From contig RHPI01000797.1 of assembly GCA_009103225.1 (NCBI GenBank), positions 8,384-72,383 of the forward strand: a stretch of DNA of 64,000 bases. The letters are read 5' to 3'. The notes beneath the pieces were generated by a model. That model was given only the letters and a program-made list of their open reading frames with translations. It did no database searches and was not told where the DNA came from. The stretch is from Chlorokybus atmophyticus (Eukaryota > Plantae > Mesostigma and Chlorokybus algae). Shown here piece after piece: positions 7,801 through 57,490 of the stretch (position 1 is its first letter; every line of letters begins with the position of its first letter). A program made the position numbers and the translations under genes.

Positions 7801-9040
7801 TTGGTACGATATTGATTGTGCATGCCTGACTAGAATCAGACTTGGAGGAACATTACAATGGGCACAGCAATGACAACAAAGAGGAGGCTAGTGACCGGGA
7901 TTGGCATGGCATTGAGGGCGACGAGGTGGAAGACGAAGAGGTGTACCATGAGCATCAGAATGGCAAAAGAAAGCGCGAAGATGAGGACTTCAGTTACGAA
8001 CGAAGGTGTGCTTGTCTGCTTGATGTGCAGTGCAGTTGTATCCAGTTGTCAACACCAGAAGGTCATGTGGCTGTGCCCTGTGGTTCGTCATCTAACACAT
8101 GCAATATGATCATGATGCAGGCCACGCAGTTTTAGGCATCATCCCTCAGTCGGCCCTGCTCCAACGCGCGTGTCTTCACGGGTCAAACGTCAAGTATGTC
8201 ATATTTTGGGATAACGTCTTTATGTCTGCATCCAGAGACATGTGGACTTATATTAGCGGTGTGTTCAGGTGGTTAGAAATGATTTCAGCTACGCTTCCAG
8301 CAATGACGGTATTGACGAGAGCGGCGACGAGCAAAGGAGACAAGCTGCAATGGACGGGCCATCTGCATCTACACGCCCAAGACGTCAGGTATGGACATTC
8401 ATACGTTTCTACCCCCAGTCATTGAGCACAAAACTGTCAGGACCAGTTACAATACCACCCATTTGTGCGTATTATGATATTTGGTTGGCTTCAGCAGGCA
8501 GCGCTGCAGGAAGCTCACAATGCCCAGTACGTATCTGGCAGTGAACTGGATGAGGAGGATGCTATTGAAGAGGCGACCCCAGCTGGGCCAAGCTTGAAGC
8601 GCATCACTCTTCGCGTGATGAACGGTGCGGCTCAGCGTCCGTATGTATCTGATGAAGATGAGGATTGTGGGCCAGTGGCAGCTCATCAGGTACGTCCGAT
8701 TAAGTAATAAGGTCGCCTGTATCCTGTTGTTTGCACATTACTTCGCACTGTTAGTCTGTTGGTGTTCCCGCAACGTCTAGTGCAACACCGGTGGATTGAC
8801 ACAAGAGGCTCTCTGCAGAGTGAGGGAGGAGGGCACTACGTTGAAGACGATGAGGATGATGTTGAAGATGCGGATGAGGATGAACAGGATTATGAGGAAG
8901 AAGAACGCGGTCATACCCCACCATCAGATGCTGGGCGAACAGACCCCAATCTTGAGTTTGACAGCTCACCGCTTTTGCCCCGTGATAGCAAGATGGACTC
9001 TCAACAACACAAAAGTGTTCCCAAGAACGGTTTTGGTTGA
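4883..9040 (+). CDS. DDR4: DDT-domain-related protein, DDR4-like (ISWI-complex accessory subunit); multi-exon
   Basis: Spliced translation gives LRKMWELASVLNFLH|TFREVLHVTVSCTVEDLESALIHPNTTLADLHIDILR|GVSPKL (exons 4883-5203, 5649-5759, 5834-5920). Later segments are YAKLSAPQRVRLLLAICELRSD, FRPGPLGNDSAGNMYW|YELDDICGWRMYKE and RERKPVSYTFEAYEQSIAEAI. These match, in order, the blocks I recall from plant DDR4 (MWELASVLNFLH; RKPVRYTFDDY). The acidic C-terminal exon stops at 9040. Confidence 0.85.
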
Positions 9041-29759: not shown

Positions 29760-32700
29760 CGACGAACCACAAGAGTAGAATATTGCGCAGAGCCATTGCA
29801 CGCCACCAGCGGACTAGGGCAATAAATCCTTAAGCCTGCAAAGTCAATGCAACCGTGGTAATCATTAAAAGTGCAACACTTGATGGTTTGCCGTGGCGCC
29901 AATACTCATCCAATCAGCTCACAACTTGGTACAGAGGCAGGATTGGTCAATGCCTACACGACAAACTTGGAAGCACTCGATTTAATTGCAAAATGCCACA
30001 TCCACAGCGTCGCAAGTAAGTACTATCGTTAGTCGTCTGAGATTAGGTAATCGTTCGGCTTTACGTGGACTTACCCTAGCTACCATTGCATGTTTGATGT
30101 GTGTACAGCAACATGGTGAAACACTCACAACATAATAACTTTTAATGTCAATCATGTATGCAGAATGTTTGCATATTGTCTCATACATCGCGTACATTTA
30201 TACAACATACCGCGACATAGCAAACTCTGTGATGTTAATTGAAATTGTGTCACATTTGTGGCCTTATATTAATTGTACGCAACATTGCAATGTGAAGCTA
30301 AGCATGATACTATCAACAAGTAGCTAGTAATAATAATCAATATTACAATTGTTCATGGTGAAGCTGTAGGTGAATGAGTTACATTAATTTAAACTACAAT
30401 TGGTTATAATGAAGCTTCCGCAGATGAATTAATATTAATACCATAGCTTAGTAAAGTCATCCTTCCGGTCATGAATTGTTAATAGCAATTTACTAAATTA
30501 TTACAGATGTACTTCTTTGACGATAGCAATGTTTCAAATTTGTAATATAGCCACATCATGTATGATATAATATCATACATACGCAAAATGTCGTAAATGT
30601 AATATGTTAATGAATTCAACATCAATAATAACTTATGATAAGTGACATCATGTTATGATGTTATGATAATCAATTATAAACCTACAAGCACGCGAAGATG
30701 GCTAAAGATCGTGAAATTGTTTGATTAGTTGACGTAATTTCAATACATGCGAACGTTATGCATCATCTTTACTTGCTCCCAGAAAGACACGTCAAAGTGG
30801 TGTACGTTATCGGATTGTCTTTACTATTCAAAGTTAGGTATGCATGATAAAAAGCGAGCGCTTTTGCGAATGCATGTTTTGTGCATTGACTTAAAATTAT
30901 TGATGTTGATATATAAATCGATCATAATAGCTTGCAAAGGTTGGACGATGGTTAAGATGGCTGCAGAAGTTGTTGCAAGCGAAAGCCAATGCAGCTTCAC
31001 CCAATATATTATACACGTTGAGGTAGGCCCTAATCAACTTTATGCGCCAACAAGGCGCAACAACCATAGAAGGAGATGCCATCTCAACAGTGTAATGCCA
31101 ACAACCCTGAGATTGTCAAGCTTAACAATCAGCTAATAACTTTTACCATTTCTTTTATGGCTTTTATACCTTGTTTATGCAGATTGTATATTGCAGAAAT
31201 ATGCGAGGCACTCACAAATCGTGAGATAATAATTGGCATAAAAAGTATGCAGCGTTATGGTTTCAGTTACTTGTATGTCACTATAAGAATGCAAAACGGT
31301 TTAAGCTTGGTAAGATCATCTTACCAACTCATGTCTTCGAATATGATATTCGAAGACATGAGTTAGTTAAGACAAAAGAGTTGATCAAGCATGTGAGCAT
31401 ATTGCCAACTTGGTGCTTGCAATGCTTGCAATTGTGCTAACTAGCATTGCAATTCATGGTTGAAGCCAATGCCGTCGTCACTGGAAGGTGTTACGACAAT
31501 TGCGGCGGCCAAGCACGTTTTTAAACAACAACGCTTTGCAGCTCGTGCATCATATGCGCATTACATACAAGTCAAGGTGTGTATGTTGTAGCTTATGTGC
31601 AAATGCTTGTTGTCATTGTAACCTTGCACACGCACTTGTTCTTGAAAAGCTTTTTTCCTAAGATGATCTGTTCGTAAGGGAGCTACAGAAGAAATGTTTG
31701 ATGCTCGTTTTGTGTGGCCATTCCCTGTCGGACCATGATTAGAGTGCGTGGGTACTCAACTCATTGTTGGCGAAATCATCAAGAGATTTAGCTTCTCACT
31801 GACCATGCATGCAGTACTCATATGAGTACTACTCATAGCATGCAAGTTGTCACCGTTCCTCGTTCGAGTACTCGCGTGTTGCTCGAGCATGTTTTATAAA
31901 CATGTTATTACAACTCCGTCATCGTGCTTGTCCAATAGAAAAACATGTTGCTGCGCAAGATGGCCCCTTCATTCCTCTCCTCCCCTGCCTCTACCCCATT
32001 TTTTTTCGCGTTAAGTTGAGTCGATTGTTGGTTGCAGTAGCCATATGTCATAGCGTCACTTGTTTAAGCTCAACAAATTGTGCAAGGGTAAGCTTGTGAC
32101 ATAGCCCCACCAACTGTGTAGGGAGATCTATTGCGAAGAGAGCATGCCTAGGATCGTCCGTGTAACACACAGCGCGGCCGCTAAGGTGGCGCATACAGCA
32201 CGAGTGACATAGGACTGGTGCATCGTGGATGAGGAGTGCATGTGTGTGTGAGGTGTGTGCTATTATAATGATTGCGCCATTATTGGCAATAGTGATGGTG
32301 CATGCGTTTTTAGTCCAGTTTATGCTATAGGCGTAGCCTTCAACATGTTGGTACAAGTATTTAGGTACTGTTTATTGCGGCAGATGCTTGCCAGATGTGA
32401 TTGGAGCTATTTGTTAAATGCTGACTTGTGCAACCAAAGCAACATGCGTGCAAAGCTATATTAAATTTTTCCTCCCCCAGCACCACAGTTGCCCATAGCA
32501 TAGAACTATACGTGCAACATAAAAACTGCCGCTAATCAACCAATGATATTTAATTTTTATAATTGCGCACTTAGTATTTTTACGACACGACGTAAACACA
32601 AGTGCAGATAAGATGTCTCTGAAATTCGAGTATATCATGCTATTCTGCCACAGCTACAATCCAATACACAATTTATCATCTATCAATACATTGCATAACA

Positions 32701-34000
32701 TTATAACATTAACAATGACCAACCGCGATGTGCAACATTGCTAGCCACAGCACCTTACCGTACCCGTAACATGTGGCAAGGATGCATTATTTATTATACA
32801 ATATTAAGTAATTGTTCTCCTGGTAGCGACTTTGGCTATCATGATCTGGTAGTTAAGGCACCAGTTTTATACCATCAATCGCATGCAGAACAACGGTAAT
32901 TGTGTACACACATTCTTGTAAGTGCACACCATTGATCACATCATGTAAGTGCTTACGTATTGCGTGCCATAATATTGTTAATAGTATTTCGATAAAGAAT
33001 TTTGAGTATATCATAATACATTGTAATGAAAGCCTACAAAAGTACTTGCGTGTCTGAACGAGAATCTATGGTATGATGCAACTAGGCTTTACAAGCATCA
33101 TCTTAGGTTAAAGTTATTGTTTAATTGTATCGCTAGCACTTGTATATCTTTAACGCCTTCATCCCATAATCATATTGTTTCGTTCATGTTGCCCATATGT
33201 AGCCATATCTGCCATGCGGTTGCTTCATTTGACTGCAATACGCTTCCGTCAATTTGCAATAAGATGGCATCGCCACCAATCGCAAGGTGTTGTTGATGAT
33301 GCGGTAAGTGAGTTGGTTGTGCACAATTGTCTTGAAGCTGCTTCAAAACAGCGTTGAACATGACGTAACTTATGCTTGCTTTTTGTAACGGCTCTTTGAG
33401 CTCATACAATGTGACAGCCAATACCTCACCTTGTCATGCAATGTTTATATATACTATGCATTGGTACAGAGGGGCGTATACATCATGATGTCACTTTTAC
33501 AAGCACACTCTGTCCCTATTGATGAAGCCTACAACGAACATACAGACCGTCTGTCCTACATATGAATGTTAGCAATATTCATACGCATGACCACAAAAAA
33601 CACTACATAGTTCATTATGCATTTAATAAGTTGTGGTGACGACAGTGCATGTAGCAGTCAGACAAAACACAGACGCTCAGGCTGTCAACTATTGGTGGGA
33701 GTGGTTGACACCATTGCAAGGTCATGTAACTTAGCATGTATTGCTTGCGGCAAGTATACAGCTTATCTGTACTATCACAACAGAGCAGATTATACATCGT
33801 AGTGTGCGTTGTTGTTGCAGCATCCACCTATAAACTACGAGTCGCGCTATGTCGCGATTGTGCATTGAGCTGTGGTAGCAAAACTTGTATCCTACTAGTT
33901 TTGCTTGGTACCAATCAGACAATCACTGTGACATTGTCTATACTAAATGCATTTCCTTCAATGCAAGTTGCCAATGTTCATTGTTACTTGAACATTTAAG
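29760..34000. other. AT-rich island of decayed, unidentified coding-like sequence
   Basis: About 4 kb markedly more AT-rich than the genes, lacking the CA/TG intron microsatellites, with only short interrupted ORFs. No family confidently recognised. Confidence 0.45.
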
Positions 34001-39937: not shown

Positions 39938-40693
39938 ATGCCGTTCGACCTTAACCGCACTGGAGACCTCGACGACAACAACCTCGACGGACATGAGGAC
40001 CACAACAACTACTTGTACAGCAACAACAATGCCAACAACCTTAACATCACCAACCCCAACATCAACCCCCGCAATTCTGACACCAACACCAACACCAACA
40101 CCAACATCAACAACAACAACAACACGTCCGCCAGATACGCTGAGCTGCTTCGGCTGGCAGCGACTGAACCCCACAGAATCCTCCAACGCTACCACGAGGT
40201 ACTCTCTCAGTTACGTTCTTGCATTGTGTGTGTTTGGCTCAAATCTCTCAACACCATATACACGAAGTGTCACGGGCGCAGGCTGTTCGGCTGCACGCTG
40301 AAGGCCGCATGACTGACTCATACTTCCAGAACCTCAAAAGGTAATGTAATTCTCTCACTGTGCGCGCATGTGCGTGCGCGCGCGCGCGTTTGGTGCGTGC
40401 GTGCATGTGTCACTATCAATGCCACTTTTTGACACGTGTACAATGTGTTTGCATATGTCTCAGTGCTGTTGAGGTGACGTTTAGTCTAGCTAGGAGCGGC
40501 GGCAGCGATATCGGCGCTGGCAGCGGGGTTGATGTCGGTGCCAATAGGGGAGACATCGCCTCTGGCATGGATGATGGATACCGCGTGTCTCTATCGCCGC
40601 TCTTCTCGTCACACAGGACGGCGTCGGTGCTACATCCGTATCAACAACGACTACTGCAACAACAACGGCGAGTTCAGTACCAACAGGATCAAG

Positions 40694-40724
<31 letters not shown>

Positions 40725-40828
40725 ACAACAGCAGCAACAGCTGCAGCAGCAGCAACAGTACTGGCAACAACCGCAACTGCTGCAACAACAACTACAAATG
40801 CAGCAACAGCAACAGCAACAGCAGCAGG

Positions 40829-40862
<34 letters not shown>

Positions 40863-40953
40863 ACAACAGCTTCTGCAACAACAACAGCTTCTACAACAAC
40901 AATGGCGACAACACCAACTTCAACTGCAAGTCCAACAACAACAGCTACTACTA

Positions 40954-40987
<34 letters not shown>

Positions 40988-43900
40988 CACCACCACCACC
41001 ACAGCCCGTTGGTTTCACTCCCAAACAGCGCACTGTCTTCATGGCCCAGAAGGCCGTTCTGCATCAGATCATTAGCGGTTTGTCCCCGCGCCGCGATTGG
41101 ATACTTGCCACGGCGCTGCAGATGTCGCAGCCACAGCCGCCAGCGCCGGCGCCGATAGCCGCACCCGCCACGATATCGGCGTCAGCCCCCCTGGCAGTGG
41201 GATTCACGCAGGCGCAGCGAGTGGTGTTGAACGCACAGTGCAGCGTGTACCAGGGGATCATGTGGGTACCGCATCTGTGCGTGTGCGCATGAGGAGTTGA
41301 TGTTGTTGAGTTGTGATCGTTGTTGACGTTGATAATGATGTTGTCACCAGGACTGGTGTGGCGCCGAGCAGCACGGTGAAGTCGCTCGCATTGTTGAAGC
41401 CTCCTCCTCCTCCTCCCCCATCTCCTCAGTACCATTCTCTGCTGCCACCTCCTTCTGGTCCTCCTCCTCTCCCTCTTCCTCCTCTTCCTCCTCTTTCTGC
41501 ACCTCCTTCTGCTCCTCCATCCGCTCCTCCTTCTCCCCCTAATGGTGGCGAGGCAGTCCGGGGAGGCCAACTCGACCTCAACCGGCAACCAGGTGGACAT
41601 CATGTTGGCTTGTTGTAACATCTGTTTGCGTGCAGTAGGTTGTCGTGGTTGTTCTCAGCTCAACATCATTGATTCATTGATTGTTGATTGGTTGCTACAG
41701 GTGTATATATGCTACAACAACAACATCAACCACAACCACAACCACAACCACAACCACAACCACAACCACAACCACAACCACAACCACAACACCACCACCA
41801 CCCACCACCACCACCACCACCACCACAACAACCACCGGCTTCCACCTCCTCTGATCCTCCTCTGCATCAAGCAAGACAACCAATATCTAGTTCCTCCCCC
41901 TTCACCTCAGTGGATATCCACCCCGTCCCCCCTCCGCTATCGCGTTCCCCCGCAGCGATACCATCGGCCAAGCGCCAAAGCGTCAAAGCCGCGAAAGCCA
42001 AGTCGCGCGCGAAGAAGACGTCGGGGACTAAGGATGATATCGGCGTCGAAGGGAGGGACATCGACGACGCGGGGGTTGTTGTTGTGACGCCGGGGCAGCG
42101 CGCCATGTTCGATGCGCAGGTGCATGTGTGCTACAAGCTCAGGTAGGCACACAGCCAAGGGGCTCTGGTGTGCGTGTGAGAATGCCCTGCGTGTGCGTGT
42201 GCGTGTGCGCGTGCGCGTGCGTTTGCGCTTGCCTGTGCGTTTGCGCATGCGTTTGGTGTTGTGCACGTACGTACGCACGCACGCGCGCGCACACACACAC
42301 ATGCGCTGTGTCTTCTCACTGACATGCGTTTTGCGTCAGGGTGGGGTTCAAGGTCCCACCGTCAACTTATAATTGTGTTGTTGTGGTTTTGCTTGCGCTT
42401 GCAGGTACGGCGTCCGGCCCTCGGCCTCCCTCCTCCTCTCCGCACTCGGCCGTCCTTACAACAGTCCCACCCAAACAGGTATGTTGACCATCACCATCAC
42501 CATCACCATCACCATCACCATCACCATCACCATCACCATCACCATCACCATCACCATCACCATCACCATCACCATCACCATCACCATCACTTTTGTTTTC
42601 AGCTCAACCGTCATCTCCATTGAGAGTCAGCCCGACAGCGGCTCAGTCAATGCCACCGCCAACAACAACAACAACAACTATCACATCCACAAAACCCACA
42701 ACAACAGCAACAGCCGTAGTAATGACAAAGACAACACCGAAGAAGAAGGTGACGAGGCGGCTGAGTGACAAGACGATGTTGGGTTTATCGCTCGCGCGCA
42801 AAGACCATCCCGAAGCCGCTGTCGACAACAGCAATGACAAGAACAACAATGAGAAGGATGAGGAGAGGTATGGTGAGTTCAGGGTCGAGAGTGTGGAGGA
42901 GAGGCGGCGGAAGGTTGCCATGCTGGACTCTGAGATTGACAAGCTAGCGCAGAGTCTGGCTGTGGCACTCAAGTCCTCCCTAGCTGATGCACTTGTCAAC
43001 AACAACAATCGCAACAACAAGGAGGAGGACAAGGAACTGGGTGATGCGCGCGTGGTTGCCACCACAGTTGACGAGTGTGTGACATCAGTCAGCACAGAAG
43101 ACAACATTCTCAACAACGGTTACAAGAACACTGACACCAACAGCACCACCAACGACAACTTGTTGGGCGAGTTGTTGCGCGTGAAGCAGCTGCGTTTGCT
43201 CGGGCTTCAGCGCAATGCACGCCGGCGCTTCCTCGCGGACGTGTTGGGTGCAGATGAGCACGACGATGATGGTAAGCACAACCACAGTAACAAGCACGGT
43301 AACAAGCGCCACGCCGGTGTGGAGGAGAGGCAGGAGGACGAGGAGCTCTACCCGCACGTGCGGGGGTGGAGACGATGGCAGAGGCGGGCGGCGGGACCAG
43401 CAGCCCAGAGACATGTTGGGGTGAGTGCGGCATGTTGTTGTTGTGGTGGTGGTGGTGTTTGATGGTGGTGTGTGCGTGTGTGTGTCTCCAGGTGAAGCGG
43501 ACTCTCAAGCAGGATCTCAAGAGGCAGGACGAGCGGTCGAGACGCCGAAGAGACCGTCAAAAGGCCTTTTTCAAGGTAAACGACAACAACAACAACATCA
43601 ACAATAACAACACGATCATCCTATTTTCTTGTCTTCAGGCTGTGGAGCAGCAGGTCGAGGTGGTGTTTGAGGGCGCGCGGCAGCGTCGGGAGCGCGCGCG
43701 TGCAGTGACCAAAGCCGTGCGCGACTATCACCGCAAGATGTGAGTGTTTATGTGTAAGACATGAAAGCAAATACGAGGGTGAGTGTTAACCACGTGTTTG
43801 TTTGTGTGGTAGTGTGAGCAACAGGGAGAGGGCTACCAAGGAGCGTGCGGAGAGGGAGCGTAAGGAGCGCATTGAGGCTCTTAAGGAGAACGATGTGGAG

Positions 43901-46900
43901 GGCTACCTACGCCTCCTCAACGTACGTGTTTTGTTTGCTACTCTTGTGTTCACCCATCCATACACTGATTATCCAGTCATGCTTCTTGTCGATGGTACGG
44001 ATGGTGATGCGTATGTGTGTGCGTGTTGACACGCACATGCACCTTGCACAGGCGCACACTCGTGTCCATGCACTTGCACATCAACACACGCGCGCACACA
44101 CAAGCACATATGCGTGCACACAAGCTCATGCTCTGTGCGTGTCTGAGCAGGAGGCGAAGGTGGGTCGCATCCAGGATCTCCTGAAGCAGACGGACGAGTA
44201 CCTGCAGCGTCTCGGGGACAAGCTGGCGCAGGTCAAGGGACTCGCGCGAGACATTGGAGACTGCGACGCCGACATCGACGCCGACGCCGACGCCGATGCC
44301 GACATGAACAACAAGGACAAGGAGAAGGACGAGGTCAAGGACGAGAACAACGACGCCCCCGGCAACAACAAGCCGGCCCTCTCGGCTGCTGAGGTCAGAC
44401 ACCGTTTGTCTCTCACTCAACAATTGCAAAAGCGAACTTGCTGACCCGCTTTTCCCACGTGTTCAACAACAGCACTATCGCCGGACGCACGAGAACTACT
44501 ACCGCCGTGCTCACAGGTGAGTCTGTTGTTGTTAATGCTACCATTGTTGTCATCGTCGTCGTTGTCGTTGATGTGTAGCCAACCATTTGTTTTATTCACA
44601 GTGTGGACGAGCTGTCCAACGTGCGTCAGCCCGCGACGATGGGTTCGACCACGTTGACGATGAGGTCGTACCAGCTGCAAGGGCTGGCGTGGCTGCTGAG
44701 TCTGCAGAGGAACCGACTCAACGGGATACTCGCGGACGAGATGGGCACGGGGAAGACGATACAGGTGGGAGGAGTTGTGGATGAGGCTTGAATACATGTG
44801 TCAAGTGTGACTGTGGATTGTGTTCGCTTGCTGCTTCTGTTTTTGCCTGTCTCATGCGTGCGCTCGTGCGGGCGAGCGCGCGCGTGTGCGTGTACATGTG
44901 TGCGTTTGGCTACGACACATGCGCAAGCACATACCCACACCCACACTTCAATCTCCCCCTCAGGTCATCGCTCTCATCTGCCACCTGGTGGAAGCATCAG
45001 ACCCCTCCTCCTCCGGCCCCTTCCTGGTCGCTGCTCCATCGTCTGTGGTGCCGTCGTGGTTGGGGGAGCTCTCCCGCTGGGCTCCTTCTCTCACAGTCGC
45101 GGCGTACCGCGGCAGCCCCGCCGAGAGGAAACGGGTGTGGGAGGAGAGGGTGAGGGAGGAGAGGGGGAGGGCGGAAGTGGTGGTCACCACGTATGAACTG
45201 CTGATGGGGAAAAAGGTGCGTGGGTGGGTGGGTGGGGGTGGGTTGGGGTTGGGGGGGAGGGGGGGTGCGTATGTGCGTGCGCTTGCCCAAGCCTATGTGT
45301 AAACACGCTCTCACGCACGTGCGGCACGTACTTGCACCTTTGCACACGAGCGTACATGGGGGCAGAGAGTCGGCCTCCCTACTCTCTCCCCTTGGGCACA
45401 TTACTCTCGTTGTCTTACTGTGCTAATCCCACACTCAGGACCGCAAGCGCCTCTCCAAGGTTCCCTGGCGCTACCTCATCATCGACGAGGGCCACCGTTT
45501 GAAGAACAGCGGTTGCCGTCTCTCCCGCGACTTGTCTAAATACTACACATCCCAACACAGACTCCTCCTCACCGGCACACCTTTACAAAACCGCATGGAG
45601 GAGTTGTGGTCTTTGCTACATTTCCTATTGCCAAGCGTGTTCGAGTCCGCGGGAGAGTTCAGTAAGTGGTTCGAGAACCCCTTTGAGGAGGGGTGCGAGA
45701 CGCTCAATGAAGAGGAGGAACTGCTGCTTATATCCAGACTGCACGCCGTGCTGAGACCGCTCATGCTGAGGAGGCTGAAAGAGCATGTGGAGACGGATCT
45801 GCCGACGAAGACGCAGCATTTGTTGAGAGCGCAGCCGTCGGCGTATCAGGTGGGGAGAGGATGTGTGTGGTCTTGCCACTGATGATCTGATGGATACGAC
45901 TCCAACGTTAAGAGTGGGTCTCAGTTGTTGTGCCTAATGTGCTCCTTCTCCTCCTTCTGCTTGTTGTTGTTGTTGTCATGGCAGAGGGAGTTGGCAAGGC
46001 GTGTGAAGCTGAGGCTGAGGGAGAAGCTGGGTGGCGACGGGGGCGCAAGCAACTCCACTTCGAAGCAGCCTCGCGCCATCCACAACACCGTCATGGAGCT
46101 ACGCAACGTCGCCAACCACCCTTTCATCTCGTGCCTCCACAACGACGAGGTGATGTTGGGTCACTGGTACCCGACACAACATTAACAACATGTTGGGTTA
46201 CTGGTACCCGACACAACAACTGACACACAACACAATTAGGTGGAGGAGTTGCTGAAAGTGATGCACCCTTCCCTCCCGCCGTTGGTGAGGGCGTGCGGTA
46301 AGTTGGAGTTGCTGGACCGCGTGTTACCAAAGTTGTTGGCAACGGGACACAAGGTCCTCCTGTTCTGCACCATGACGAGGGCGCTGGACCTACTCGAGGA
46401 GTACCTGCATTGGAAAGGGTGAGAGAGACGAGGATGTTTGGGTGTGTTGGGGGAGTTGTTGTGTCGGGTGAAGTGAGGGGTATGATGCGCTGTTTTGATG
46501 AGTCAGTGTGCGGGCAACGGTGCCAAGATGCGGCTAATAAGCACCCACGCTCGCGTTGTTGTGTTGCTGTGTGCGCGTTTGAGTGCGCATGCAGCTGTGC
46601 ATGACTGCGAAAACATGTGTATGTTTGTGGTAGTATCAAGTGTCTGAGGCTTGACGGCGCGACGGCGGGCGATGAGAGGGGTCCGATGGTGGCGCGCTTC
46701 AACGCGGTGTCCACATCAGCAGGTGATGATGTGCCGGAGTCGGTGTTTCTGCTGAGCATTCGTGCGGGTGGCGTCGGGCTCAACCTGCAGGCGGCTGATA
46801 CGGTCATCATATACGACACCGACTGGAACCCGCAGGCAAGGAGAACGCTGTGTGCGTGTGCGTGTGCGTGTGGTGGTCTTGTTGTGGCCGTGGAGTGATG

Positions 46901-47518
46901 TTGAAGTTGTGTGCGCTACTCCTGCAGATTGATCTGCAAGCCCAGGCGCGAGCCCACCGCATTGGTCAGACTCGGGATGTCCTAGTCTTGAGGTACGCTG
47001 GGCGCGTGTGTAATCGTTCATCAGCACACGCGCCCAGACATACTTGCACACACAGACAGACACGGGCACGCATGCAAACACAGTACGGATAGTCATACAG
47101 GACGCGCGCGCGCACTCGCACACGCGCAAGCGCATGCACGCACACACACACATGGTGCATGTCACGCAGGTTGGAGACAGTTGGGACTGTCGAGGAGCAG
47201 ATCCGCGCGCGTGCCGAGCGCAAGCTGGCGGTCGCCGACAAGAGCATCACCGCGGGCTTCTTTGACAACCACACCTCCGCCAAAGAACGCCAGGTTGGGA
47301 TTGTGGAATTTGACACAAACACTCCTTCATGACATACACACTCAAACTCGATCTCACACAGGAGTATCTGGAGGCTCTCCTGCGTGATGCCAACGCAGAC
47401 GGGAGCGCACTCGGGGCCGGCGATGTTGGGGCCGAGGGCGTGCGCGGGACAGCACTCAATCGCCTCATCTCTCGCGGGCGGGAGGAGTTTGAGGCCTACG
47501 AGCGTATGGATGAGGAGG

Positions 47519-47572
<54 letters not shown>

Positions 47573-48654
47573 GTGGTTGTCACTCGCGGTTGGTTACTGA
47601 TGAGGAGATGAGTCAAGTGTTAGCGGAGTTGAGAGGTTCTTTGGAAGAGGATGAGAAGGGCAAGGAGGGGGAGGACAAGGAGAACGAGGAGGACAAGAAG
47701 GATGATGAGGAGGAGTTGGGTAGGGGCAAGCGAGTGAAAGGAAAACGTTGGTATGCGGCTTACGAGGAGCATCTAGCGGATGCGAGGTTGCTACCGAGAA
47801 AGGAACGGCTTCCTGCTTGTGCTTCAGCGAAGGAGAAGCCAAAGAAAAAGGCCAACCCGCCCAAGCCTGGAGCGCCTCCGAGGAAAAGAGGCCGGCCGCC
47901 AAAGCAAAAACCTGTTGAGGTTATTGAAGTGGCTTCTGATGAGCCTCCCAGCAAGCGTGTTTGCGTGGACCAAGTTGGAGCGAGTCAAGAGCCTGAAGGA
48001 AGCCAGTTGGGAGTTGGTGCTGGGGAAGTGAGGGAGAAGGTGGAGGGAGGGGAGCTTGTTGAGGCTGTTCTGCCTGCAAGAACCGCTTCTCAAGCAGAAG
48101 AGAAGGCAATATGTATGGAGAATGGAGTGCCTGCTGGAGATGAAAAGAGTAGTGTCAGTGTTAGTCCTGAGGCTACTACGCCCTTAGTTCTAGCTTTTGA
48201 GGAAGATGAGGAAGACGCCGAGAAGATAGAAGCCAAAGCTGCAGAACACAGCGAGAAGCCCGAAGGCCAAGAAGCCAATCTGGAAGCGCTGCCTGCCAAT
48301 AGTCGGCTACCACAAGTTGAGGTAGAAGGCAAACCTGAAGCAGTGAGTGATAGATGCGAAGCGCAAGATGAGGAGGGAGCGCACGCCACGCCTCCTTGCG
48401 TGAAGCGGCCGCGGTTTTCGCTCAACTTGGCTTCCGGCGAGTCCAGTCTGGATTCCAGAGCCATGGGTGTGGTGGACCTCACAGTCAGCACCCACTTGGG
48501 GCAGTGCAATGGCACCCCCGTTTCCGCTATCACATCTCGCTCCGCTCTGGCTTCCGCTTCCCCCGCTCTCACATCATCCAAACCGGTACCCGAGTTCATC
48601 GCTCGACTTAATGCTGTGCTTAGCACTGGAGGCTCGAGCAATAAGCAGAAGTGA
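39938..48654 (+). CDS. SYD: SWI2/SNF2-subfamily chromatin-remodelling ATPase, SPLAYED-like, with three QLQ-like modules, HSA, ATPase and SnAC regions and no bromodomain seen; multi-exon
   Basis: The N-terminal block [11 protein letters not shown]|[20 protein letters not shown]|AVE resembles the SYD N-terminus. HSA/post-HSA: [17 protein letters not shown]...[17 protein letters not shown]. ATPase motifs: [12 protein letters not shown]...[78 protein letters not shown]|[14 protein letters not shown]. SnAC-like [19 protein letters not shown]. Stop at 48654. The SNF2 family call is firm; SYD versus BRM/MINU is less so. Confidence 0.85.
42488..42590 (+). repeat. (CACCAT)n intronic microsatellite, about 17 units
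   Basis: Perfect hexamer run between a GT donor at about 42479 and an acceptor at about 42602. Confidence 0.95.
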
Positions 48655-49307
48655 CGATTGTGTGTCTTGTGTCGGTTGTGTGCATTGAAGAGTTGAACTA
48701 TTTTTGCCTTAGGTAGTGGTTAGCTATTGGTGGGCAGCTGTTTGTGCAGTTGCGCGTGAGTCAGGTGGGAGTGTACATGAAACGGTTGTTTCCGCCTGCT
48801 GCACTTGCATCTTGACAACGTCATGTTGTCACCCCGCCTATTGCGTAGATGCTGGACAAGCAGATGCACGCGGCATAACCTTTCCCGGTTGACCTTGCAG
48901 AAAGCGCACAACCTGTTGCCACTTGGGCTATGGTGTCGTATGTGCAACATGGTTGACAGTCCCTTGACAGTAGGCACATGCAAGTCCAAGTCGCAGTCTA
49001 TATGCATTCAGATATAATCTTGGATTGCCAAGGGAGTATCCTACATACAGCACGCTAATGTAATGTACAGCCTCACATACTAGCACCAACTACCGCTGCT
49101 CATTTGCAGCAATGCAGCAACAGCATCGTTGCCCAACAACACAGCCAACACAGCAACACAATCTTGCCCACGACCTCGCAGCGCCCGCAGCCTTGCATGC
49201 CGGCTGTCAAGGGGTCCCAACCAACGGCGCCAACAAGCAAGAGCCCTACAATGCATGCAAAACCACTGTGCCACGCCACTCCAAGATGGAGAAGTCCTCT
49301 GTACAAA

Positions 49308-54430
<5,123 letters not shown>

Positions 54431-54702: not shown

Positions 54703-57490
54703 ATGTGGGCGGTGTCGCCGCTGAGGCGGCCGGCGACGTGCGCGTGGCGGACCAGGTGGTGGCCATGGACAGTGTCGTGCAGTGCGCCTGCCTCCACCAC
54801 CCCCTCGGACGCAGCGGGCAGGTCGAGGGGCAGCAGTGTCTGGGACCTTTCGGGCGTCAGCCGCGGCGGCGGCGGCGGCGCAGCTGCAGGTATACCAGGC
54901 CACACGAGCCAGGCTCTCCTGCAGCGGCGCGGCGCCATGACGGCGGCGGAGCAGGCAGGCGTTAGCCGCGATTCTCGTTTCGCCCACTTGCAGCCGGAGG
55001 ACGTGGCGTACTTCAGGCAGGTGGACCTTGCGTTGCGTTGAAGCAAACCTTAAGTATAGGCGCAGTTGTGTGATGTTCCTCTATGTATTATGATCATGCT
55101 TGGCATATTGTTATATAAATGGTGCTAGCATCCGTTTTCCTGCATTCGTTTGCTGTGGTAGCATGCAACTTGCATTGCCAGTGCGCCCCACTTTGTGTTT
55201 TAAGTTTCCACGCACAAGCAGGGCTCTTTGAGTACAGTTGTTGCTTTGTTGCAGAGGCCAATTCTTTGAATCGAAGCATCCGTCGCTATATTTTTGCAAT
55301 GCTGTGACCTTTATATTGAGGTGCGGCTACTGATGCGCAGGAAATAAGAAGCTGACAAGACGTTTGTCGTCCAGGGGCTTGTTGGGTGATTCTGGTGTCA
55401 TAACGGATGCCGACGAACTCAGCCCATTTAACAACGACTGGATGAACAAGTATCATGGCAAAAGCCAGATTGCATTGCGCCCCAAAACCACTGAGCAGGT
55501 GCGGGAGCGAAATTGTGGGGCATGGGAGTATTCTTTACTAGACCATCATGACTGGATGCTACTGCAGCGTAGCATGACTGGATGCTACTGCAGCGTAGCA
55601 TGCATGTGAGATAGACAACTAAACATTGCATGTGGCTATGCAGTCTACTAGTAGCAGGTTCGCTGACATAACACTTCTTCGTGTCTTGGCATGTTGCAGG
55701 TCTCGGAGATCATTGCCCATTGTAGCCGGAGAAGGTGATTGTCAGATTGCTCATTGTGACAATCATGCTGCTTGCAAGCCCCCTTTTATGCGAAGCATAT
55801 CGTGACTGCAGACTGGCAGTCGTGCCGCAGGGAGGCAATACTGGCCTTGTTGGCGGTAGCGTTCCGGTGTTTGATGAGGTGAACTTACTGTTGTTGGCAT
55901 GTGTATGTACGTCGCACGTGGCACATTGTCTGACTGTGCAGCAACCTTTCCACTGCAGGTTATTCTGTCAACCAGTGGCATGGATAGTATCCGGAGTCTT
56001 GATCAGGTAAAGCCGCTGGTGCAAGTATTTGCACTTGAGTTTTTGATAAAGATGTGCTAGTAGAACTACCAGCACATCGACAACAGCTGCCAGGAAAGGG
56101 CACGAGTCTCAACATATGACGTATCAGGTCTCAGGCATTCTGACTTGCCAAGCCGGTTGCATTCTCCAAACCCTTGATGATTATCTCTCGGATTACGGGC
56201 TTATGATGCCAGTGAGCTTTGGAGCAAAGGGAAGCTGCCACATCGGCGGAATGGTCTCAACCAATGCGGGAGGAGTGCACTTTCTGCGCTATGGCTCGCT
56301 GCATGGAACCGTTATAGGTAAACTAATGTTTGTGTTATGGTTGGAATGCTATGCACTGTAGTATGTACAGATCTGAAGCCATGTTGGCATGCATTGCAGT
56401 TGGTCAGCCAGCACGCACGCACATGCACGCACGCTCGCGCGCACGCAGCGGAAACTGGCTCGCACGTATGAACAGCACCACACCTGGCGACACACGCACA
56501 CACCCTCCCTCTCACACACACGCACGCACGCACGCACGAGGTCACACACACGGCGACACACATATGCCTAACGCCTTGACATATGCTGCAGGGCTGGAGG
56601 TTGTGCTGGCCGATGGCAGAGTGTTGGATCTGCTAAGCACGCTAAGAAAAGACAACACAGGGTACGACCTCAAGCAGCTGTTCGTCGGTGCCGAGGGCAC
56701 TCTCGGCATCGTGACTGCTGTGTCCATTCTGGCAGTCCCAAGACCTGTTTCGCGCGAGCTAGCCTTCCTCGCATGCCCAACATATGATGCCGTGCAAGCA
56801 ACATTTGTCGCAGCGCGGCAACATCTTGGCGAGGTGCTGTCCGCATATGAGTTTATGGACAGGGAGGCCCTTGACCTAGCTGTCACCCACCTTGATGGTG
56901 TACGTGACCCGCTGCCGGAGACTGAGTCCCCGCTTTACGTGTTGGTGGAAAGCAGTGGAGCTGATGAGGCTGGCAACATGAGAGCGAGGATGGAGCGGTT
57001 CCTTGAGGCAGCCATGAGTGAGGGACATGTTGTCGATGGCACCATCGCGCAAGATGACACGAAGGCGGGTGCGCTGTGGCGCATGCGGGAGGAGCTGTCC
57101 GTGGCATTGGTTAAGGCCGGTGCGGTGTACAAATATGATCTCTCATTGCCGATCAAAGATATATATCCATGCGTGGAGGCGATTCGCGAACGTGTTGGCT
57201 CGGAAGCAACTGTTGTTAGTTATGGGCACTTGGGCGACGGCAACTTGCATCTAAACGTGTCGCTACCCGCATATAGTGATAGCGTGTTTGCCCGAATCGA
57301 GCCGTTTGTGTTTGAGTGGGTTGCGGCCAGGCGCGGCAGCGTCAGTGCAGAGCATGGGCTCGGCCTCATGAAAGCCAAGGCGATTCACTACTCAAAACCC
57401 CCGCAGGCAGTGGCCCTGATGAAGCACATGAAGGACATGCTGGACCCTCACGGGTTGTTGAACCCTTATAAGGTGCTGCCACCCTCCTAG
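54703..57490 (+). CDS. D2HGDH: D-2-hydroxyglutarate dehydrogenase (FAD-linked oxidase, mitochondrial type); multi-exon
   Basis: RDSRFAHL...YFR|[13 protein letters not shown]...[86 protein letters not shown] and [13 protein letters not shown]. The start codon (54703 or a downstream ATG) is uncertain. Confidence 0.95.
55547..55602 (+). repeat. 26-bp tandem duplication in a D2HGDH intron
   Basis: CATGACTGGATGCTACTGCAGCGTAG twice, followed by CATG. Confidence 0.9.

Follow-up and report, generated by a model that had tools for sequence, protein, structure and literature searches.

The window analysed here is a stretch of 64,000 nucleotides (nt) of Chlorokybus atmophyticus DNA (assembly GCA_009103225.1, contig RHPI01000797.1, forward-strand positions 8,384 to 72,383), which contains on its plus strand, at ~40.5-48.65 kb, a gene that is, judged from its sequence, a Snf2 ATPase of the SYD (SPLAYED) type and the Chlorokybus orthologue of SYD, far shorter than the SYD proteins of land plants. 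Chlorokybus represents the deepest-branching lineage of streptophyte algae, and the QLQ domain constitutes the handle of SWI/SNF ATPases and plant GRF factors on the SS18/GIF co-activator. In the disordered, Gln/Pro/His-rich N-terminus encoded by the gene, a Gln-rich tract precedes three modules homologous to QLQ, termed M1, M2 and M3. The favoured interpretation, to which a probability of roughly 70% is assigned, is that these modules are three diverged SYD-type QLQ domains, which would have arisen by intragenic duplication together with an intron and which may serve in docking.

The assignment to SYD is based on best matches, with the self-match and one duplicated ISWI-like fragment set aside. 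In a search of 1.84 billion representative proteins, the exon at 45427-45879 was 99% identical to a Chlorokybus protein of 1311 residues, the EukProt entry Chlorokybus_atmophyticus P006002, which equals jgi/Chlat1/6402/Chrsp45S06022 and is hereafter referred to as the public model (label P0001). Next came, at 61-64% identity, a Mesotaenium model followed by some 40 proteins of land plants, 2400-4400 residues long, which NCBI names SYD or SYD-like. Pfam recognises the SNF2-related domain (SNF2-rel_dom, 1.3e-78) and Helicase_C (1.8e-11) in the public model, in addition to a weak HSA match (0.002) under the gathering score, and the exons align to Selaginella SYD in tblastn, while a bromodomain (PF00439) was detected by Pfam neither in the public model nor in the last exon. 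Taken together, the closest matches, the Pfam domains and the missing bromodomain point to an SYD-type Snf2 ATPase. The gene thus shares with land-plant SYD an ATPase core of 61-64% identity, an HSA-like region and the Snf2 ATPase organisation without bromodomain. By contrast, it lacks the very long C-terminal extension of land-plant SYD (proteins of >2400 residues), as the open reading frame ends at 48654, and the whole protein is estimated at ~1,850-1,900 residues.

By three-frame translation and splice-site reading, three modules of ~35 residues each are recovered on the plus strand. M1 (41011-41118) encompasses 36 residues in a single exon without intron, and its core reads QxxxFxxQ, with Phe replacing the name-giving Leu. 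The N-terminal half of M2 (41200-41261) has the canonical QxxxLxxQ and after it the Cys also seen in land-plant SYD, and it ends with two bases of a split Met codon, whereupon a GT..AG intron of 89 nt (41262-41350) interrupts the 8th codon after the core Ala-Gln in phase 2, and the C-terminal half (41351-41393) continues with G-V-x-P and closes with A-L. In M3, the N-terminal half (42081-42142) again carries QxxxFxxQ and ends with two bases of a split Arg codon (AG/G), like the lycophyte SYD genes; the GT..AG intron that follows (42143-42404) measures 262 nt, is rich in GCGTGT repeats and likewise lies in phase 2 within the 8th codon after the core Ala-Gln, and the C-terminal half (42405-42447) runs from G-V-x-P-S to A-L, with exon D continuing to 42478. 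The intron borders read cat/GTGGGT...CACCAG/g in M2, where the codon is split AT/G, and cag/GTAGGC...TTGCAG/g in M3, so that both introns have GT..AG ends and a CAG acceptor. The adjoining introns at 41593-41700, for which a second in-phase donor is possible near 41545, and at 42479-42602 also show GT..AG ends and keep the reading frame. Overall, every exon involved is open, and the splice sites are canonical and frame-preserving. A previous reading made from the letters alone, hereafter the sequence-only reading, had described an SYD-like ATPase, three such modules at these positions and two phase-2 introns in the same codon, all of which was recovered. A 17-nt GCGTGT-type motif common to both introns was dismissed as low-complexity sequence and is not counted as evidence of homology.

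The modules resemble one another far more than expected by chance. The motif [FVILM][TS]xxQxxx[FLMIV]x[AS]Q has three occurrences in the 64 kb translated in six frames, and these are precisely M1, M2 and M3. Pairwise identity amounts to 34-40% with 10 invariant positions, and the pairwise local scores lie at 46-56, where none or one of 5000 shuffles scored as high. The hallmark residues kept in each copy are Thr, Gln-Arg, Ala-Gln, Val, Gly, Pro and the terminal Ala-Leu, the turn Gly and Pro being present in all three. M2 features the complete Q-x3-L-x2-Q core together with an aromatic residue at position 2 and the downstream Pro, while the core of both M1 and M3 is Q-x3-F-x2-Q. Moreover, the C-terminal half of M3 resembles those of M1 and M2 only under the proposed splice. 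A DNA-level repeat search did not identify the modules as recent repeats; since they have diverged at the DNA level and escape detection as repeats, the duplication is old.

The relation to QLQ was assessed by searches run exon by exon or via the public model, and by hidden Markov models (HMMs) built from retrieved proteins, namely a 6-sequence SYD QLQ HMM, a 37-sequence land-plant SYD profile, a 23-sequence diverse QLQ profile and a three-module profile. The 37-sequence HMM, which is too narrow, did not yield significant scores for the modules in the translated window, and the 23-sequence HMM ranked M2 first of 1359 translated window segments (8.2 bits, E 0.15). Profile-profile comparison with hhalign gave a match of the three-module alignment to the diverse QLQ profile with a probability of 92% (P 5e-7, 32 columns) and to the 37 land-plant SYD QLQs with a probability of 91% (P 1e-6, 36 columns). 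In 200 column shuffles of the module alignment, the mean hhalign score was ~8 and the maximum 14-17, versus observed scores of 28.5-29.9. Each module taken singly was also aligned with the diverse profile, M2 scoring 25.5 (probability 89%), M3 18.4 (P 2.2e-4) and M1 17.7 (P 3.6e-4). In the reverse direction, the three-module HMM, applied to 165 Snf2-family proteins, matched in register on the QLQ of ~35 SYD and Snf2/BRM proteins and almost nowhere outside QLQ in these very long sequences. In addition, each module agrees with the land-plant SYD QLQ majority at 10-11 of 35 residues, whereas 10 matches or more are attained at only 4 of the 127,786 positions obtained by reading the unspliced window in six frames. 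Finally, the modules are located where a QLQ is expected in an SYD orthologue, after the Gln-rich tract and before HSA.

These observations support, at the level of sequence, that M1, M2 and M3 are QLQ homologues. With the QLQ domain (PF08880) of Snf2/BRM/BRG1 and plant GRF proteins they share the length of ~35 residues, the position after an N-terminal Gln-rich tract and the pattern F-[TS]-x-x-Q-x-x-x-L-x-x-Q, which is followed by a Gly/Pro turn and a second hydrophobic stretch. They differ from it in remaining under the Pfam threshold and in the replacement of the central Leu by Phe in M1 and M3, and in lacking two Glu that characterise the QLQ of GRF proteins. A QLQ of SYD flavour is indicated by A-Q-C, G-x-x-P and the A-L end, and above all by a phase-2 intron at the identical place in the domain.

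The genomic loci of three land-plant SYD genes, from Selaginella (L001), Diphasiastrum (L002) and Cucurbita pepo (L003), were compared for this intron. In all three, the 8th codon after the QLQ Ala-Gln specifies Arg, and a GT..AG intron cuts it between its second and third base (at ~2263-2313 of L001, ~4851-5084 of L002 and ~3264-3362 of L003). Codon and phase are the same in Chlorokybus M2, where the codon specifies Met (AT/G), and in M3, where it specifies Arg (AG/G) in lycophyte-like fashion. Because a module of 35 codons offers ~105 intron positions, two independent coincidences are very unlikely. The shared codon and phase argue that the ancestral SYD QLQ gave rise to M2 and M3, that the intron is older than the split of Chlorokybus from other streptophytes, and that genomic DNA was duplicated with the intron included. 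Hence, the sequence comparison supports the M2/M3 intron as the ancestral SYD QLQ intron and an intragenic duplication of the intron-bearing QLQ. With respect to M1, which is devoid of the intron, either the intron was lost or the module stems from a spliced copy. M2 most likely represents the positional orthologue and the copy nearest to the canonical SYD QLQ, because the Cys after Ala-Gln is common to M2 and every land-plant SYD.

In the other proteins examined, the domain is encountered as a single copy. The six-sequence SYD QLQ HMM gave a single QLQ per protein for all land-plant SYDs of the match list, and among 225 Snf2-family proteins retrieved, 76 carried one QLQ (domain E <0.01) and none a second one, even at E<=1. 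The predicted Chlorokybus protein with its three copies stands against a second copy in 0 of the 76 QLQ-bearing proteins examined. In comparison, land-plant SYD is a protein of 2400-4400 residues with one QLQ and a huge C-terminal extension, whereas Chlorokybus SYD is estimated at ~1,850-1,900 residues and is predicted to have three QLQ copies with low-complexity linkers between them. A full-text literature search found no paper describing at least two QLQ domains in one protein, and in two papers concerned with how QLQ evolved, SNF2 and GRF proteins are described with one such domain, at the N-terminus (PMC6507847, PMC7380329). A parallel is provided by the GRFs of Chara, which possess one QLQ and three WRC domains (PMC6507847): here, too, a short interaction or DNA-binding domain has been multiplied in tandem in a streptophyte-alga protein of the GRF-GIF-SWI/SNF circle, yet it is WRC and not QLQ that was multiplied, in a transcription factor rather than a remodeler. 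Three further claims of the sequence-only reading are thereby strengthened. The QLQ identity of the modules stands on the profile-profile match with its shuffle controls, the in-register reverse HMM matches and the shared residues; their internal duplication on the phase-2 intron found in the same codon of three land-plant SYD genes; and the view that such ATPases normally carry one QLQ on the single copies in all land-plant SYD proteins examined and on the 225 proteins, none of which has two.

The exons around and behind the modules complete the gene. A candidate ATG at 40567 opens the Gln-rich N-terminal tract (40567-41010, plus strand), which contains 85 Gln in 148 residues and is in frame with M1. 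The frame is open over 40345-41289, which is weak evidence because the remaining two frames are likewise open across the CAG/CAA repeat. Further upstream on the plus strand, an open stretch of 87 codons (39938-40198) with ATG start, Asn/Thr repeats and a GT donor at its end may constitute a further 5' exon; no confident in-frame join of 39938-40198 to the Gln-rich exon was obtained. Between the Gln-rich tract and the later exons, the modules are separated by low-complexity linkers of Pro/Ala, Pro, (Pro-Gln)n, His and basic composition. The remainder of exon B downstream of M2 encodes a Pro-rich linker (41394-41592, plus strand; donor 41593 probable, in-phase alternative near 41545), and exon C upstream of M3 (41701-42080, plus strand), whose frame is open for 152 codons (41688-42143), encodes (Pro-Gln)n, His and Pro runs followed by a Lys/Arg-rich patch. 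The intron at 42479-42602 consists for the most part of a perfect (CACCAT)n microsatellite of ~110 nt (42487-42596), which would read as poly-His in one frame; the adjoining exons encode genuine His and Pro-Gln runs.

Downstream, exon E (42603-43423, plus strand) covers the pre-HSA region, which the public model enters at ~42717 straight from 41375, and two exons (43492-43921, plus strand) encode the HSA and post-HSA region, supported by tblastn and by the sub-threshold HSA match of the public model (E 0.002; E 0.036 at exon level). The Snf2 ATPase core with SNF2-related domain and Helicase_C occupies ~9 exons (44597-47290, plus strand), as delineated by Pfam and by tblastn with Selaginella SYD. 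The C-terminal exon (47359-48654, plus strand) features an Asn run and an AT-hook-like R-K-R-G-R-P-P-K (47881-47904) and terminates with TGA at 48652-48654; no Pfam family was recognised in it.

The public model of this gene is unreliable, and the annotation needs correcting. It uses the M2 intron 41262-41350 exactly as proposed here, and elsewhere it drops conserved ATPase segments within 46600-47300, namely a stretch that closes with D-W-N-P and a portion of what follows motif VI; the window contains both of these, and Selaginella SYD aligns to them. The model also removes the in-frame Asn run at 47503-47829. With the whole public model as query, no second Chlorokybus or Mesostigma protein appeared among the matches listed.

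A number of observations weigh against three QLQ domains in one protein. PF08880 did not match M1 (E<=10), the half-modules or the public model with its spliced M2, and the Pfam search by which the sequence-only reading had proposed to verify the domain thus failed, with zero matches, be it on the individual pieces or on the public model. As controls, PF08880 scored an angiosperm SYD (P0018) no better than E 0.29 over half the domain and did not match Diphasiastrum SYD (P0046) at all, and QLQ is missing from the precomputed Pfam lists of three land-plant SYD genes; the PF08880 result is uninformative because genuine SYD QLQs are missed as well. The 23-sequence diverse QLQ HMM scores M2 weakly, at the 8.2 bits and E 0.15 given above, and reports neither M1 nor M3, which deviate from the hallmarks by Phe for the name-giving Leu and, in M3, by Val for the conserved Phe at position 2. 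The M1/M2a exon gave chance matches only in a phmmer search of PDB sequences. With regard to copy number, the comparison takes in no other streptophyte-alga orthologue with an intact N-terminus, as the Mesotaenium model, the sole other streptophyte alga among the matches, is truncated and begins just before HSA. The public model begins at a Met within M1 and joins 41375 to ~42717, so that M3 is lost altogether, along with the exons rich in Pro and His and the final part of M2. Protein searches with exons C and E, in which proteins of 0.55-1.75x the query length were visible, returned no transcript-derived protein, and in metagenome scans neither a relative of the M1-M2 exon nor a sequence matching the spliced M3 junction came up.

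How far these points reach depends on the explanation that is set against the favoured one. Those concerning domain recognition, i.e. the missing Pfam match, the weak HMM scores and an ESM Atlas look-up of M1 that gave no usable match and hence no named look-alike, would suit a lineage-specific repeat unrelated to QLQ that resembles it by chance. Such a repeat is hardly credible and already close to refuted, in view of profile-profile probabilities of 91-92% that withstand the shuffle controls, reciprocal in-register matches on QLQ domains, the expected place between the Gln-rich tract and HSA of an SYD orthologue, and an intron in the same codon and phase as in the SYD QLQ of three land plants, for which chance offers ~1 in 105 per module. 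The points concerning the gene model bear on a different explanation, according to which the protein contains one functional QLQ, M2, while M3 is normally spliced out, the first half of M1 belongs to the 5' leader, and M1 and M3 are decaying relics. Here, the start of the public model inside M1, its skipping of 41376 to ~42716, the deviating residues and sub-M2 scores of M1 and M3, and the lack of transcript support in the length-limited searches with exons C and E would fall into place. Against this stands that the public model is demonstrably wrong elsewhere and cuts the end of M2 as well, that 10 invariant hallmark positions are kept in all three modules despite an identity of 34-40%, and that all exons are open with canonical, frame-preserving splice sites, the C-terminal half of M3 fitting only if spliced as proposed; we consider a single functional QLQ unlikely. 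The expression of M1 and M3 is argued indirectly, from open exons, canonical splice sites that keep the frame, and hallmarks retained after long divergence.

Another explanation, which appears less probable still than that of a single functional QLQ but more so than a chance repeat, assumes that alternative splicing sets the number of QLQ modules. Since both QLQ introns are in phase 2 and exons B and C together amount to 684 nt (228 codons), a splice from the donor at 41262 to the acceptor at 42404 would keep translation in frame, and by arithmetic and translation it would fuse the N-terminal half of M2 to the C-terminal half of M3 into a hybrid, yielding an isoform with two QLQs. That the public model skips this region hints that the predictor, or the RNA hints supplied to it, met skipping; its junction differs from 41262-42404, though, and the proposal draws on gene structure.

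Adjacent to the SYD-like gene, and tail to tail with it, an ISWI-type Snf2 ATPase gene with a HAND domain is located on the minus strand (49100-54000). Its highest similarity is to SMARCA5/ISW1 (E 1e-54), and two remodeler genes are thus convergent neighbours in this window. Further downstream, an exon of an FAD-linked oxidase of the D-lactate / D-2-hydroxyglutarate dehydrogenase type is found on the plus strand (56327-57487; Pfam FAD-oxidase_C, 2e-55). The GC content of the window drops to 0.38-0.40 at 30000-34000, compared with ~0.52 in the rest.

In the favoured scenario of three diverged SYD-type QLQ domains, an ancestral QLQ with its phase-2 intron would have been duplicated inside the gene, with M2 and M3 keeping the intron and M1 being without it. 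The QLQ region of human BRM has SYT/SS18 as its binding partner, and the QLQ of GRF the SNH domain of GIF (PMC7380329, PMC6507847); in Arabidopsis, GIF2 is a subunit of BRM and SYD complexes and not of MINU complexes (bioRxiv 10.1101/2022.11.24.517835), and a GIF is reported from transcriptome data of Chlorokybus (PMC6507847). If the modules behave like the QLQs of BRM/BRG1, SYD and GRF, an SS18/GIF co-activator could dock with its SNH domain on each of them, and the algal SYD could recruit up to three GIF molecules or bind one of them with higher avidity. The derived modules M1 and M3, with their Phe for Leu in the core and Val for Phe in M3, could also serve other partners, and skipping of the 684 nt between the QLQ introns would give the in-frame hybrid QLQ of a two-module isoform. 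A more far-reaching possibility, which must be considered doubtful, is that all three QLQs are expressed and act in a distinct or additive manner, so that several SS18/GIF molecules, or GIF and another partner, may be docked at the same time, while exon skipping might tune the number of sites.

The intron may prove a more durable result than the triplication itself, for a phase-2 QLQ intron that extends from Chlorokybus to angiosperms would provide a sequence-independent marker, as judged from SYD genes, for SYD-type QLQs which PF08880 leaves undetected. Moreover, a natural three-copy SYD would offer a simple system for asking if the number of docking sites matters to co-activator recruitment. 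The QLQ would here be duplicated in the very lineage in which GRF is thought to have borrowed its QLQ and, on the more far-reaching reading, the Chlorokybus duplication would constitute a living example of the kind of event that has been proposed to have seeded the GRF family.

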